A stretch of 63,764 nt of DNA, counting the filler, from Reticulomyxa filosa (taxonomy: Eukaryota; Protista; Foraminifera), in assembly GCA_000512085.1 (NCBI GenBank). It is 13 parts of 13 records of this genome, joined end to end, with 100 filler letters (N's around TTAATTAATTAA, not from the genome) between each part and the next. Parts side by side here need not be neighbours in the genome. Positions count along the whole stretch, not along the records: positions 19,195 to 23,914 come from ASPP01039567.1; 12 more parts are not named here. One strand, given 5' to 3'. The first letter of the stretch is position 1, and every line of letters starts with the position of its first letter. Below are positions 3,175 through 23,914 of the stretch, piece by piece. Position numbers and translations under genes: made by a program. The notes under the pieces are model-generated. The model saw only the letters and a list, made by a program, of their open reading frames with translations, ran no database searches and was not told where the DNA came from.

Positions 3175-4477
3175 ATGTCGTGGAATTGGAATGATTCTTC
3201 AGAGTCAGTAGATAATCCAAATCGTGATGTGATTGTAAAAGACCCGCCAAAAGGGAGTATTTCATCTTTACGATGTTCGCCGACACGTAACATGCTGGCA
3301 GTGGGTTCTTGGGATGCTCATGTGCGAGTGTATGAGCACGATAACAATGGAAATACAAGATGTTTAGGTTTAAAAAAGCACGACAAGCCTGTTTTGTGTG
3401 TATGCTGGGATGAAACTGGACAGCACGTTTTCAGCGCAGGTTCGAACATTTTTTTTTTTGGAAAAATCTTTCCAGCATATATATTGACTAACACAAAAAA
3501 AAAAAAAAAAAAAAAACGGCTGTGACAACACTGTGCAAATATGGAATCTGCAAAAGCAATCATTTCAAGCACTAGGCAACTATCACAAAGCCGCAATAAG
3601 TGACGTATGTTACGTGAAAGAGAAGAACACAGTGATAACAAGCAGCTGGGACGGCAGCATAGCATTTTGGGATTTGCGCATGTCGCAACGAGGCATGACG
3701 ATCGACGACATAAAAGCAAAGATATTCAACATGGGTTGCAAAGAGGTATTGCTGGCTTGTACGCTCAGCAACCGCCATTTGCGCTGGTATGACATCCGCA
3801 ATCCACGACAACAAAATGACGTGGAAAGCGCGTTTCAAACGCAATTGCGAGGCTTGGACTGTTTTCCTAATGGCGCAGGATTTGCCGTCGGCTCTGTGGA
3901 AGGACGAATTCAAGTGCGCTACATTAACAAAAAAATGCAGGATGAGAAAGGCTTTTCGTTCAAATGCCATCGCCAAGACGCGACAGACAAGAACTACTCT
4001 TACAACAACACCTCCACACACGTTTACAGCGTCAATGCTTTGCGCTTTCATCAAGAAATGGGCACTTTGGCAAGTGGGGGCTCTGATGGCGAAATCAGCA
4101 TTTGGGACAAAGATGGAAGGTTATTTATTTACTTTATGTGGTGTCGTCTTTTATTATTTATAAATAATAATAGATTTTTTTACTTTATCTAACCAACTGT
4201 TATTTATTAACAATTATTTTTTTGCTGCTTGTTATTGCTAAATTATATGTAACCCCACTCAACACACAGAGCTCGCTTGAAACATTTGGCTTGCATGAAA
4301 CTACCCGTTGTCTCTTTGGACTTCTCGCGCGATGGCTCTGTACTAGCTTATGCCACCAGCTATGACTACAGCAAAGGATTTGATGCAAATGCTCTTGAAA
4401 AAGAAAAACCTCGCATATATCTGCATCGATTACAACGGGAAGATGTCGATCCTAAAGCCAAGAATAACAATAGCTAA
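3175..4477 (+). CDS. RAE1: mRNA export factor Rae1/Gle2 (WD40), 3 exons (3175-3439, 3519-4119, 4270-4477)
   Basis: Family motifs GSWD, GSVEGRI, FSFKCHR, VYSVNALRFH, GTLASGGSDG, WDKD-R-RLK and AYATSYDYSKG. The last matches Rae1 SYDWSKG rather than Bub3. Confidence 0.85.
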
Positions 4478-19194: not shown

Positions 19195-19213
19195 AGGGCT
19201 TAGGGCCTAGGGC
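19195..19213 (+). repeat. Telomere-like heptamer repeats AGGGC-TTAGGGC-CTAGGGC at the element 3' terminus / contig end
   Basis: Units contain the TTAGGG/CTAGGG core. Only about 2.7 units are visible before the contig ends. Confidence 0.55.
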
Positions 19214-19244
19214 CGCGGACGACGCTTGCGCGTCGTCCGCGGCC
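19211..19244 (-). other. Perfect 15-bp GC-rich hairpin with GCAA (GNRA) tetraloop on the element sense strand
   Basis: GGCCGCGGACGACGC-GCAA-GCGTCGTCCGCGGCC on the minus strand. Confidence 0.92.
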
Positions 19245-19283
19245 TTTTGGCCTTTTGGCCCTGTTTATGTGTCATTTATTCGC

Positions 19284-19525
19284 GTGCCTAGCATGGTATT
19301 TGTGTGTGTGTGTGTGCCTAGCTTGATATTTGTGTGTGTGCCTAGCTTGCTGTGTGTGTTTACTGTGTATGTGCCTAGTATGTGTTGGTTGTGCCTAGTG
19401 ATTGTGCCTAGTGTATTTGTCTATTGACTGTGCCTAGTATGATATTTGTGCCTAGTGATGTTGATGTTTGTGCCTAGATGTGTTTGTGCCTAGTGTGTCC
19501 TTTGCCTTTTGTGATTTGTGCCTAT
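19284..19525 (-). repeat. Array of 10 exact CTAGGCAC octamers (+1 variant) with unique spacers in the retroelement 3' UTR
   Basis: GTGCCTAG on + at 19284, 19314, 19338, 19371, 19391, 19404, 19430, 19448, 19470 and 19486; variant GTGCCTAT at 19518 overlaps the RT stop codon. Confidence 0.92.
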
Positions 19526-21600
19526 TGCCTGTGTGTATTCCCTTTGTTTAGTGATCTGATAATGTTGTTGATGTCGCGATTTTTGGTGTATATTATTCGG
19601 GTTCTTTTGCCCGTGTTCTTTGATAGCTCCATTTCTGCTTCTTTGATGTATTTTCGTTTGATATTTTTGTGAAATGGTACATTGATATTGATGCAGTCGG
19701 TGGGTATGATGTATTTTCGCTGTCTTTTTTGTGTTTGTGTTTCCCACAGGTCGATCAATCTTTCTTTGATGTCCATTCTATGATATCCACATTGCCATAG
19801 TTGTATTTGTATTTGTTGTTGTGCGTTATGATATATTTCAGGCGTGGCTGATAGTCTGGCGATTCTTTGATTTATGCTGCGAATGGTTTGTAGGTACCAT
19901 TCTTTTTGTCCATGTGATGTTGGATTGATGTATGGTTGTTTTGTGACGTGTTTTATATGTGGTTCAAATGTGAATTTGTTTTGTAGTGTGTGTATTTGTG
20001 TGTTGTCGTTGTTTTTGATGGTGATCTGTGTATTTTCATTTTGGAGTGTTGTATTGTCTGTATTTGGAATGCTGTTGCTTGTTTTTATGATTAGATCGAG
20101 AAATTTTTGTGTGTTGCTGCATTCGCCAATGATTGGCCACTCTTTTTTGTACATGTATGGTATCCATTGTGTGATCACGTCGTATACGTTGATTTGATTC
20201 ATGTCTACTATGAATAGGACGTCATCCATGTATCCATACACTTTGAATATTTGTGAGTTGGTGTCAATGTGTTTATGTGTGAGAAATTTTTCTTCGCAGT
20301 AGTTGCGTACGATTTGTGCAGTTGGAGGGGCATCACTGTCTCCTTGTGCTAGACCTTTGATTGTTTTGTAGTATGTACCCTCTATTTCAAATGCTGACAT
20401 GTCAGCAAGGTTTCTGTAGTAGTCCAAGATGTATTCGAACTTTGTTTGATTTTCATTTTGAAAATTAATGGACATTTGTGTGTGATAGTGTGTGTATGCG
20501 TCAATGATTGTTTGGTATTCAATTTGATTGTAGAAGTCTTTGATATCGATGCCAATCATTATGTAATTTCTGTTTTTTCCTTGTAATTTGCGTATGCTTT
20601 CGGCTACATCATATGAATTTTTAATGCACCAATTTGTTCTACTTGCAATGTTGTCAAGGTACATTTGTGCTATCTGTTGTGCTTTTTTGGAAAGGTCTCT
20701 TTTGTATGTGTGGAATGATGATATGATTGGTCGGTATACGTGTGGTTTCTTGTGCAGCTTTATGATTGGGCTGCATTTTGATATTGTAGGTTTTTCAGGA
20801 GCATGTGTGTTGTGTGTGATGCTTTGATGTTTGTTTTTGAACATGTTGAATATATTCTTTTGTTTGTTGAGAATGCTGTCGAGATCACTTGTGGCTTCGT
20901 GTTGTGGCATGTGTTTTAACTTAGCCATGAGTTCATTATGTTGTTTGTCGTCGATGATGACGATTCCCTCATTGTGATCTGCAATGACGAACTTTACCTG
21001 CATCTCCTTTTCTATTTGCATTAATTTGGACTGTATGTTGAATGTGTGTGCATTATGTTCTTGTATTTGTGCTGCAAAATTGTCGCACGTGTTGTTTATT
21101 GCATTAGATTGTTTGTCGTCAATGTGGAGCATTTGTTGTGTTAGTTGGTCTAGTATGTTGCAGGTTCTGATGTTAGGTATACTTACTTTTTTCTTGATTT
21201 GTTCTTCAAGAAGTATATTCCTAATTTTTGCGTCGATGTTGTTGTTGTACGTTTGTATTGCGTTGTACGTACTGTTTTTGAGAGGGTTGTGTGTGTTGTT
21301 ATACGTATTTGTTTGATAGGGTGAGAAGTTCTTCCCTTTTGCAATTTGCTCGATGATTTCGAGGGGAATTTGTTTGTTGGTGAGTATTGTGACTTTTTCT
21401 TTGAGAATATCGGTCACGTATTGCAGATTTTGTTGGTGTATGTTTTCTTTGTTGGAATTTTTGCGAGAAAATATGGTTTTGTTGTTGTGTATGATGAGTT
21501 TTGCGAGTTGGAGATGTGTTTTGTTTTTTGCCGGTGCCTTTGAACGTTTTTTTGGGGGTTCAAGGGTGTCGGTTCTTAAACAAAAAAAGACGGCCTTTTT
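19522..21600 (-). CDS. Penelope-like reverse transcriptase (ORF2); frame open from 21600, probably expressed by -1 frameshift from ORF1
   Basis: PLE motifs in order: IAKGKNFSP, IADHNEGIVIID, PIIKLHK..YRPIISS, motif A GIDIKDFYNQI, motif B KGLAQGDSDAP, motif C YMDD (20221-20232), FLDL, thumb YINPTSHG..IRSINQRIARLS..CGYH, INVPFH. Stop follows with no GIY-YIG domain. Confidence 0.9.
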   Translation of the reverse strand, partial: KKAVFFCLRTDTLEPPKKRSKAPAKNKTHLQLAKLIIHNNKTIFSRKNSNKENIHQQNLQYVTDILKEKVTILTNKQIPLEIIEQIAKGKNFSPYQTNTYNNTHNPLKNSTYNAIQTYNNNIDAKIRNILLEEQIKKKVSIPNIRTCNILDQLTQQMLHIDDKQSNAINNTCDNFAAQIQEHNAHTFNIQSKLMQIEKEMQVKFVIADHNEGIVIIDDKQHNELMAKLKHMPQHEATSDLDSILNKQKNIFNMFKNKHQSITHNTHAPEKPTISKCSPIIKLHKKPHVYRPIISSFHTYKRDLSKKAQQIAQMYLDNIASRTNWCIKNSYDVAESIRKLQGKNRNYIMIGIDIKDFYNQIEYQTIIDAYTHYHTQMSINFQNENQTKFEYILDYYRNLADMSAFEIEGTYYKTIKGLAQGDSDAPPTAQIVRNYCEEKFLTHKHIDTNSQIFKVYGYMDDVLFIVDMNQINVYDVITQWIPYMYKKEWPIIGECSNTQKFLDLIIKTSNSIPNTDNTTLQNENTQITIKNNDNTQIHTLQNKFTFEPHIKHVTKQPYINPTSHGQKEWYLQTIRSINQRIARLSATPEIYHNAQQQIQIQLWQCGYHRMDIKERLIDLWETQTQKRQRKYIIPTDCININVPFHKNIKRKYIKEAEMELSKNTGKRTRIIYTKNRDINNIIRSLNKGNTHRQ
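21531..21588 (-). promoter_or_regulatory. Putative programmed -1 ribosomal frameshift signal
   Basis: Slippery heptamer T TTT TTT (21588-21582) in ORF1 phase. About 9 nt downstream lies the stem-loop CCG..CCTTGAAC / GTTCAAAGG..CGG. ORF2 is in the -1 frame. Confidence 0.65.
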
Positions 21601-23914
21601 TCAAAGTTTGTGTGCCTTGCATCTCTATAAAAGTTCCGGTTAGTTGCATGGTAGTTCCTTCTGAAGGTTTGCCAAGGTCTTTGTGTAGTTGGCGAGTTGT
21701 TATTTTGACTTTGAAAGTTTGTTTGTTGACTAGGTTGGTTTGTTTGTTGACTGTGCGTGTGACTGTAGACTTCTTGCGTTTCTCCAGCTTTACATTGGTT
21801 GTGCCAATGATTTCCTCCGCATTTTCTGCACAGCGATGGAGGCTCTGGGTGTTTGCCTCTCGCGTTATTTTCTGTACACTGATCTGTACCTCTTATATAA
21901 TTTTTTATGTGCGACCTTGCGTCGTTGTGAGTTTGCCGTCTCATGTTCCAATTTATTTTCTGGCTGTTCCATCTTTCTCTGCGTTGAAACACTTTTCCCC
22001 TTTGGGGCTGCGACATGATATTATTGTGTTGTGTTGTGAAATTATTGCGTTGCGACATTGCGTCACTGTGAATGTGATTGTTTTGTGTTGTTTCTGCAGC
22101 TATGGGGCATTGATTATGCCAGTGCATTTCGTTGCAGAATTTGCATGGTTTTGTTGGCATTTTTGTTTGATTGTCTTGCCATTTGTTAAAGATGTTTGGT
22201 TTTTTGTTGAAAGTGTTTGGCTTTCTGTAGAAAGGTGCATCTGGATGTTGATATTTCATGTTGTTTGTTTTATGCCAATTGTTTTGATACTTAGAGCGCT
22301 GATGCTTTTGATTTTTGAATTGATTGTTTTTGTTTTTCCAATGAGTTGTATCTGTTCTGGCCCTGTTCTTTACTGTGTTTTTTCTGCATTCATTGTTCCA
22401 GTGGTTGCCGTTGCAGTATTTGCATGGTGTTGGTGGTATGTTTTGTGTGATGTTTGTTGCGTTTTGTTCCGTTTTATTATTTTGTGTGTTGTTTGTATTT
22501 TTAGAACATTCACTATCCCAATGTTTACCATTACAGTGCTTGCATGGTCGTGTTGGTATACGTTTTATAGTTTTGTGTATATGTTTTTGACCTGCATCTT
22601 GTGTGTTGTTTTGTTGCATATTGGTTTGACTATTGATATATTTATTCTGCTGTGTGTTGTGTTGACTATTTGTGTAATTATTTTGTTGCTCATTGTTTTG
22701 TTGCTCATTGTTTTGTCCGTCCATATTGACGTCGCTGTTTTGTGTTTTTATTTTGCATATAGAATGATGATGCTTTCTGTCTCCACAGTGTTTGCATTTG
22801 TATTCGGGGCAGTCTTGGAACCAATGAAATGCATTTTTGTCGCAATTAATGCATGTGTTTTTTGGTGTATTGTGTGGTTGTAGTGATTGGCATGTGTATA
22901 TATTGTGTCCAATTTTGTTGCATCTCATGCATTTGACGTTTAGGTTGTTTTCACTGAGGATCCTGTCCATTATGATATTTTCTTTTCTCATTGTGGATTG
23001 TTTGATTGCAGCCTTAACTTTTTCATCGATTTGTATTGGTGGTGCAGCATTGATGCATGTATGAAAATAATAATTTAAATTATCATATGTATTTTGATTT
23101 GGTTGTATGTTTTGTATATTATTTTTAATTGCGTGTAGTGTTTCTTGTACTTCAAGGAGTTTGGATAGAAGTTGTGTTAGATAAACAAATGTTCTCATTT
23201 CTCTTATTTTGGCTTGATTGAGATGTATGCATTTAGTTTTGATTTTTGTGTCATTGCATTGTATGATAGGTTGTTTTACTTTCCATCTTATCCGTAATTG
23301 GTTTGCGATTTTGATTGCGTAGCTTTGACATAATCTTAGGTTCGAGCACATTTTTATTATCCATGTACTCATTTTTGTTGTATTGTGGTCCATATCTGCG
23401 GATGTGTCGATGTCTTTTGTGCATGTGTTTTGTATTTTTAATTTTTGTAGGATTTCTGGCAGTTGTGTGCATATGTCATTGATTATATTGTCATATTCGC
23501 CTGCATCATGATTAGTCGCATATATGGTGCTCCAAAATATGGCGTTTATATTTATTCCGTCGTTGTATATGGCAGTATTTTGTTTTAGCACCCCGAATTC
23601 CTTAAAGTCAATGTGTGTGTTGCTTTGTGTGTTTGTTATTGTTTGTTTTAGCCATTGTATGGCGATGATTGGATTTATTTTGTCAAAATTATCTTCGTTG
23701 TTTTCATTGATTTTACATTCGATAGGTGTTGTGTGTTGCTGCCCATTATTATCTTGGTACTCATGATTTTGATGCTCACTATCATCTTGTTCATGATTTT
23801 GAAGCTCATGTTCCTGTTGCTCATCGTTTTGTGCTTCATTTTTTTGTTCCTCGTAATTATTATTAATATTATCATTATTATTATTATTAATATTATTAAT
23901 ATTATTGATATTGG
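21576..23914 (-). CDS. ORF1: Gag-like nucleic-acid-binding protein with 7 CCHC zinc knuckles; frame open to the contig end
   Basis: CMRCNKIGHNIYTC, CINCDKNAFHWFQDC, CKHCGDRKHHHSIC, CKHCNGKHWDSEC, CKYCNGNHWNNEC, CKFCNEMHWHNQC, CRKCGGNHWHNQC. Manual translation shows no stop between 23591 and 23914 (N/Q/E/H-rich). Confidence 0.8.

Follow-up and report, generated by a model that had tools for sequence, protein, structure and literature searches.

What is a long, G+C-rich hairpin doing beside telomere-like repeats in the A+T-rich DNA of a foraminiferan, and what kind of element carries the two? The question arises from a window of 63,764 nucleotides of Reticulomyxa filosa DNA, in which an initial annotation, made from the sequence alone, had noticed such a module. 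The piece analysed here (positions 19195-23914 of the window, from ASPP01039567.1) measures 4720 nt with 36.6% G+C. Its entire coding capacity lies on the minus strand, and the module lies at the sense 3' end. The positions of all features are given in Table 1.

A GNRA hairpin directly precedes telomere-like heptamers

The plus strand of the piece opens with AGGGC, TTAGGGC, CTAGGGC and C (19195-19214), so that the annotated (T/C)TAGGGC heptamers of the non-coding strand can be read directly. TRF assigned the array a period of 7, with 2.9 copies and a 92% match, and the sense unit is RGCCCTA. The G-strand heptamers, CTTAGGG and CCTAGGG, are TxAGGG-type units. The array is truncated by the edge of the piece, which shows 2.9 units and neither an extended array nor a chromosome end. 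Across the piece, YTAGGGC was found at two adjacent sites only, with 0.19 expected.

The hairpin stands immediately before these C-strand repeats, as the initial annotation had described (19195-19260), and the two share a GGCC, which belongs to the first sense unit of the tail and also lies at the stem base. All 15 base pairs are Watson-Crick, 13 of them G/C (87% G+C), with no G-U pair. The loop (19226-19229) reads TTGC on the plus strand and GCAA on the minus strand, a GNRA tetraloop with a C-G closing pair. That such a stem is extreme in this DNA was confirmed by shuffling: it stands out because the piece has only 36.6% G+C, and 200 shuffles of the 4720 nt gave perfect stems of at most 10 bp. 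The 34-nt hairpin core has a folding energy of -35.6 kcal/mol, and the 68-nt module reaches -51.5 kcal/mol (z = -9.1; 0 of 200 shuffles equally stable).

On its other side the hairpin is flanked on the plus strand by TTTT-GGCC-TTTT-GGCCCT (19245-19262), the two sense AAAA-GGCC units that had been reported upstream of it. The resulting block can pair with the heptamer tail, GGCC with GGCC and AGGGC with GCCCU, which lengthens the hairpin. This extension contributes -15.9 kcal/mol, and none of 1000 shuffles of the block did as well. In full duplex with its G-strand partner, the tail would reach about -33 kcal/mol (RNA parameters), far more than the pairing with the block, and therefore the tail could be masked by the block and then freed by a real overhang.

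Table 1. Positions of features in the R. filosa piece (window coordinates), in environmental relatives and in metagenomic contigs (locus coordinates; for the arrays of L025, L103, L053 and L059, on the reverse-complemented locus)
Feature	Sequence	Position	Strand	Description
Heptamer tail	window	19195-19214	-	2.9 units; sense GGCCCTA, GGCCCTA, AGCCCT; G-strand on + is C(T/C)TAGGG
Hairpin	window	19211-19244	-	perfect 15-bp stem, GCAA tetraloop; arms 19211-19225 and 19230-19244
AGGGCC-AAAA-GGCC-AAAA block	window	19245-19262	-	pairs with heptamer tail, 4 + 5 bp
3' UTR	window	19263-19521	-	~260 nt, A/C-rich; 10 exact CTAGGCAC plus degenerate copies
ORF2	window	19522-21600	-	PLE-type RT; 692-codon open frame (21600-19525), stop 19522-19524
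U7 run	window	21582-21588	-	U_UUU_UUU in ORF1 frame, inside 22-nt ORF1/ORF2 overlap
ORF1	window	21576-23912	-	gag-like, N/Q-rich, seven CCHC-type zinc knuckles; 5' end cut by piece edge
Hammerhead cores / CCCTAA runs	L126	135-154, 3456-3475, 3544-3723
Hammerhead cores / CCCTAA runs	L127	65-87, 618-639, 4027-4049
Hammerhead core	L128	2564-2595
Contig-terminal (CTTAGGG)n or (CCTAGGG)n array	L025	9709-9750		perfect; G-strand orientation
Contig-terminal (CTTAGGG)n or (CCTAGGG)n array	L103	1030-1127		perfect; G-strand orientation
Contig-terminal (CTTAGGG)n or (CCTAGGG)n array	L053	2470-2532		perfect; G-strand orientation
Contig-terminal (CTTAGGG)n or (CCTAGGG)n array	L060	3-72		perfect; G-strand orientation
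Contig-terminal (CTTAGGG)n or (CCTAGGG)n array	L059	9-99		perfect; G-strand orientation

ORF2 encodes a Penelope-type reverse transcriptase with no endonuclease domain

Relatives of ORF2 were gathered by an exhaustive HMMER protein search at E <= 0.001, which gave 153 matches. The best of these was the hypothetical protein RFI_39165 (P0001), encoded by the R. filosa contig ASPP01046944 (L001; 1013 nt), with 96% amino acid identity to ORF2 across the last 235 residues. Three further R. filosa proteins, 30-36% identical, are among the next-best matches, which identifies this freshwater foraminifer as the host. When word-indexed protein collections were queried with ORF2 (631 aa) and with the C-terminal fragment P0001, nothing beyond P0001 itself was returned, and exact look-ups of Met-started forms of ORF2 and ORF1 gave no record.

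Alignments of the window reverse transcriptase (RT) with 22 matches (23 sequences) and with 100 matches (101 sequences) show the signature of Penelope-like elements (PLEs): GxxF, DKG, PKxHK..RPIVS, SLYTNIP, YxQxxGxAMG, RYxDD, FLD and YxKxxxS.HP. The corresponding motifs of the window RT are KGKNF, ADHNEG, IIKLHKKPHVYRPIISS, DIKDFYNQI, GLAQGDSDAP, YMDD, FLDLII and INPTSHG, of which ADHNEG is a variant of DKG where the relatives read ADKG. The DKG and GxKF/Y motifs are diagnostic of PLEs (PMC8557442), and ORF2 combines these N-terminal motifs with a core RT and a PLE-type thumb (FLD, YxKP..S.HP). When PDB sequences were searched with a profile, TERT (7.7e-8) and also group II intron RTs were retrieved, and no LINE RT. 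An AlphaFold (AF2) model of ORF2, built on the 101-sequence alignment, had a pLDDT of 77.8 and a pTM of 0.80; used as a Foldseek query, it matched many TERTs and L1 ORF2p about equally (~1e-8), a result that does not discriminate the family and that confirms, at the level of a predicted structure, a right-hand RT. PLE RTs are the sister group of TERT (PMC8557442). The annotated RT on the minus strand is thus ORF2, a PLE-type enzyme of a telomerase-related group.

The window RT aligns at 1e-13 to P0030, a protein with a C-terminal GIY-YIG domain. Pfam detected neither GIY-YIG nor any other nuclease domain in ORF1 or ORF2, a motif search found no GIY or YIG in either, and ORF2 terminates ~90 residues past the thumb. 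Because a PLE-type RT is combined with the lack of a nuclease domain in both ORFs, the element is, judged by its sequence, an endonuclease-deficient (EN-) PLE. The piece appears to hold most of one copy of it, read in antisense.

ORF1 carries zinc knuckles and overlaps ORF2

The ORF1 frame comprises 778 codons (23912-21579) and is open at the edge of the piece. Three of its knuckles are clustered (residues 328-386), and these are followed by four spaced CX2CX3HWX3C repeats. Pfam gave no match for ORF1, and a word-indexed protein search gave no homologues. Its acidic, N-rich N-terminal part leads into (AAT)n-like sequence where the piece ends (23856-23912).

ORF2 lies in the -1 frame relative to ORF1; its frame is open starting 22 nt ahead of the ORF1 stop, and its first 156 codons contain no ATG. 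The U_UUU_UUU run in the overlap is a candidate slippery site, its sequence being that of a classic slippery heptamer; the fold downstream of it is unexceptional (z = -1.0). The feature is not conserved, since the frame relation is +1 in L002, a metagenomic relative (JGI contig) whose downstream ORF is not homologous to ORF1.

The strands of the piece differ markedly in composition. The sense strand consists of 46% A and 13% G. The antisense strand runs on from the G-strand repeats and, like a telomeric G-strand, is rich in G and T, with a GC skew of about +0.3 and an AT skew of about -0.45.

A second copy ends at the edge of the module

Between the RT and the module, the 3' UTR contains 10 exact copies of CTAGGCAC, with 0.04 expected. 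Their spacing is irregular (13-33 nt), and they span 19284-19493 on the minus strand. CTAGGCAC and the tail unit have CTAGGC in common, and the set could be putative protein-binding sites or weak internal annealing sites for an overhang ending in ...GCCTAG-3'. Contig L001 provides a second copy of this region: its UTR is ~93% identical to that of the window and keeps the CTAGGCAC motifs, with one unit gained or lost. It stops 1 nt before the module (AGGGCCAAAA), so that the hairpin is seen in one copy. A break at precisely this point suggests a shared repeat or a G+C hairpin that is hard to sequence, as a hint only.

The single copy bears on how the hairpin is to be read. According to the initial annotation, the GNRA loop exists on the RT-coding strand only and points to a function as RNA. 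The strand assignment of the loop stands; the step to RNA is a weak argument because a GNRA loop would occur on a given strand by chance in ~3% of cases, and a stem with no G-U pairs is equally a DNA palindrome. The hairpin might then be specific to this copy or act at the level of DNA, as a palindrome formed at an insertion junction (by snap-back or template switching) or as a duplex or single-stranded DNA site, with no role in RNA. The perfect Watson-Crick stem would suit such an origin, as would the folding of the plus-strand DNA (-32.1 kcal/mol, z = -7.8), the end of L001 1 nt short of the module and the existence of relatives with no such hairpin. However, the arms resemble neither the telomere-like repeat nor the element beyond GGCC, and a fold-back copy of local sequence therefore does not explain them. 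The GNRA loop with its C-G closing pair lies on the transcribed strand, and in pairing with the tail the ordered GGCC-AAAA block outdid all of 1000 shuffles, a result suggestive of a designed module. The break of L001 exactly at the module edge is also what an assembler produces at a shared repeat or a G+C hairpin. We consider a hairpin with no RNA role quite improbable.

Environmental relatives carry telomeric repeats in the same position and strand

Three environmental contigs, L126, L127 and L128, encode EN- relatives of the window RT (E about 1e-9 to 1e-10). L126 carries (CCCTAA)30, a run of 180 nt on the sense strand, 570 nt past the RT stop. In L127, (AACCCT)~4 lies ~420 nt past the RT stop, and short sense AACCCT runs flank the element on both sides. 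The tail of the window element thus matches L126 and L127 in position, strand and RT family, and because of this match the annotated reading of the tail as a telomere-annealing device is supported and, as far as sequence can tell, well founded. It is also in line with published descriptions of EN- PLEs (PMC8557442): a C-strand tail on such an element is a known principle and not new.

The relatives differ in a second terminal feature. L126 has two hammerhead cores (CUGAUGA..GAAA), one upstream of ORF1 and one past the RT, an arrangement like that of PLE terminal repeats, and its CCCTAA run starts ~70 nt beyond the second core. L127 has a core in its 5' region, and L128 a clean one 120 nt past the RT stop. 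Just past the telomeric repeats of L126, the archaeal SRP RNA model weakly matches 3982-4235 at 37 bits (E = 8.6e-6), a score below gathering; the matching stretch may represent a eukaryotic 7SL-like RNA or a SINE. The closest relatives, L002 and the R. filosa loci L003-L005, have no comparable hairpin and no telomere-like repeats at their 3' ends, and no hammerhead core save one likely chance match. L004 and L005 adjoin ordinary genes.

In the window piece, Rfam reported no hammerhead. The Rfam hammerhead models also missed the cores of L126, L127 and L128, even at E = 10. Because the cores missed in L126 and L128 are obvious ones, the test that counts is that for the CUGANGA motif. This was absent from the sense strand of the 4.7-kb piece; the 5' end of the element lies outside the piece and could possibly hold a 5' copy. 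With one mismatch allowed, the last 600 nt contained CUGANGA nowhere except inside the stem. The hairpin itself was rejected as a degenerate hammerhead, as it has no G12, no A15.1-U16.1 pair and no CUGAUGA box. The likeness of GGCC-AAAA-GGCC-AAAA-stem to helix II-GAAA-helix III is superficial and fails at the conserved core positions.

A bacterial origin was also considered. Half of the model of naRNA4 (RF02564), an E. coli REP-derived RNA, matched 19195-19244 on the plus strand with 28 bits, against a gathering threshold of 59.5, and the match runs through the common core CGACGC-TTGC-GCGTC. The 26-nt hairpin core is absent from 185,579 prokaryotic genomes, for which reason the match was judged to be due to chance. 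An identity with bacterial REP/naRNA4 and bacterial contamination were both rejected on the sub-gathering score and this absence.

The heptamer is a candidate telomere repeat

Foraminiferal telomeres are listed as undescribed (PMC13746701). Among other Rhizaria, the telomere repeat of Plasmodiophora is TTTTAGGG, and those of Bigelowiella and Saccharomycomorpha are the canonical TTAGGG. A metagenome scan for four tandem YTAGGGC units yielded at least 120 loci. Among the matches listed, these were mostly short internal arrays in G+C-rich contigs of unrelated organisms, and none was accompanied by a PLE RT. Since short (YTAGGGC)4-14 arrays are common inside environmental contigs, the motif alone is no proof of a telomere. 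Five contigs have perfect heptamer arrays at a contig end, in telomere orientation (Table 1), and some uncultured organisms may use this heptamer at their chromosome ends. In L103, as in a true telomere, the units are degenerate further in and perfect at the contig end, and L025 has AACCCTA-type repeats in a more internal position. A full-text literature search for the heptamer returned primer noise only. From the sequence of the tail, we propose C(T/C)TAGGG as a candidate foraminiferal telomere repeat.

The frequency of such arrays in unrelated environmental contigs also feeds a reading in which the element is not bound to telomeres. The heptamers would be a 3' microsatellite encoded by the element, or the remnant of an interstitial CYTAGGG-like satellite target, and the hairpin would be the RT-recognition stem-loop of a stringent tail, as in UnaL2 and SART1. 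It would sit well with the ordinary genes beside the R. filosa RT relatives L004 and L005, and with the TTAGGG or TTTTAGGG repeats of the known rhizarian telomeres. We nevertheless regard it as unlikely: the element has no endonuclease domain with which to open an interstitial target, its RT is PLE-type and not LINE-type, and its repeat, of the TxAGGG telomere type, lies where true telomeric repeats lie in the EN- relatives L126 and L127, and on the matching strand.

A model for attachment to chromosome ends

The best explanation of the module, to which we assign a probability of about 0.62, is a telomere-attaching EN- PLE. Its tail would anneal to a telomeric G-overhang, its hairpin would bind or position the RT or the ORF1 protein and/or protect the 3' end, and its GGCC-AAAA block would mask the tail. 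In outline, the RNA would end in a few repeats matching the C-rich strand of a TxAGGG-type telomere, and by analogy with Athena and Coprina, this tail would pair with the single-stranded, G-rich telomeric overhang. The 3' OH of the overhang would then prime the RT of the element, so that no endonuclease would be needed, and the resulting cDNA would be an extension of the G-strand. Priming of this kind predicts a particular order on the plus strand, and the observed arrangement, G-strand repeats followed by the antisense element with its 3' end first, fits it exactly.

In such an element, the most likely role of the GCAA hairpin is to bind or position a protein, either the RT or the zinc-knuckle ORF1 protein, and so to bring the enzyme to the annealed primer. 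A second possible role is to delimit the short 3' tail and shield it from 3'-5' trimming, which would be a non-catalytic counterpart of the role proposed for the adjacent hammerhead in other EN- PLEs. The AGGGCC-AAAA-GGCC-AAAA block would keep the tail masked until a real G-overhang displaces it. A hairpin of -36 kcal/mol at the start of reverse transcription is nonetheless as much an obstacle as a signal.

In a further reading, the module works like telomerase: the tail would be a reiteratively copied template and the hairpin its template-boundary element, and the element or a derivative would add C(T/C)TAGGG to chromosome ends. A very stable helix immediately 5' of about 1.5-2.5 template-like repeats is indeed the arrangement of telomerase RNAs, and the RT comes from the group that is sister to TERT (PMC8557442). 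A template boundary fits poorly, however, because a retroelement propagates only if its RT reads through the hairpin. On the template the UTR comes after the hairpin, and its presence in the window copy and in L001 shows that it was reverse-transcribed. Instead of being a dedicated non-coding RNA, the module forms the end of a protein-coding RNA of 4.7+ kb, and no repeat addition was seen in the sequences examined. We hold this reading to be very improbable. In its boldest form, it describes a primitive telomerase-like unit in which the PLE RT often stops and realigns at the stem, and the element RNA or truncated derivatives add heptamers to foraminiferal chromosome ends; this is a highly speculative idea, given the same low standing. 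If true, a stage between telomere-attaching retroelements and telomerase would survive in such a unit.

Comparison with known systems

Telomerase RNA is a dedicated non-coding RNA whose short, helix-bounded template is copied reiteratively. The module shares with it a stable helix directly 5' of a C-rich, template-like stretch and an RT related to TERT; it differs in being part of a two-ORF coding retroelement RNA whose RT must pass the helix. Stringent LINE tails offer a second parallel. In UnaL2 of the eel (a stem-loop plus terminal short repeats) and SART1 of the silkworm (its 3' UTR), the stem-loop is bound by the RT and the repeats pair with the target. The order of a stem-loop and then short tandem repeats at the extreme 3' end is the same in the window element. 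UnaL2 and SART1, however, have LINE RTs with endonucleases, whereas the window RT is PLE-type and has no endonuclease.

The Drosophila telomeric retrotransposons HeT-A and TART, for which strong strand asymmetry has been reported, resemble the element in their zinc-knuckle, gag-like ORF1, in the orientation, predicted for the window element, of the 3' end toward the centromere at chromosome ends and in a G/T-rich antisense strand. They differ in that they are LINEs of the jockey clade with poly(A) tails, have no complement of a telomere repeat and live in hosts that have no telomerase.

The closest parallel is with the EN- PLEs, which have been described in rotifers, fungi, plants and a small number of protists. 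No retroelements are more closely related to telomerase, and these elements serve as the main model for its origin. A hammerhead motif is found in the terminal repeats of most PLE clades and is absent in Naiads, and is thus not strictly defining. Two EN- clades are named in PMC8557442, after Gladyshev and Arkhipova 2007: Athena of bdelloid rotifers, including Terminons, and Coprina of fungi, plants and protists. In the same text, reverse-complement telomeric repeats beside the hammerhead ribozyme (HHR) let EN- PLEs attach to G-overhangs. The window element shares with Athena and Coprina a PLE-type RT that has the N-terminal motifs and the thumb and lacks a GIY-YIG endonuclease, an ORF1 upstream that in some cases is set off from the RT by a frameshift, short reverse-complement telomere-type repeats at the sense 3' end in an orientation that fits G-overhang priming, and a structured RNA element adjoining the repeats. 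This likeness is one to the published descriptions, the RT matches themselves being environmental proteins and not clade references.

Against this common plan, the differences lie in the details of the module and its host. In the published Athena and Terminon elements, a ribozyme stands beside the tail, whereas the window element has a 15-bp GNRA hairpin in that place and no hammerhead core in 4.7 kb. Athena ORF1 is drawn as coiled-coil in PMC8557442, whereas the window ORF1 has seven CCHC knuckles. The window element also differs from Athena and Coprina in its 7-mer repeat C(T/C)TAGGG and its foraminiferal host. What is new here is therefore the foraminiferal host lineage, an ORF1 with zinc knuckles, the heptamer and a hairpin in place of a ribozyme, and the literature searched contained no paper linking PLEs with Reticulomyxa. 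Judged from one copy, a foraminiferal family would extend the range of EN- PLEs into Rhizaria, C(T/C)TAGGG would be the first concrete candidate for a foraminiferal telomere repeat, and a plain, stable GNRA hairpin with a tail-masking block would replace the ribozyme beside a telomere-complementary tail. The hairpin module would thereby offer a simple RNA for binding and priming tests with recombinant RT.
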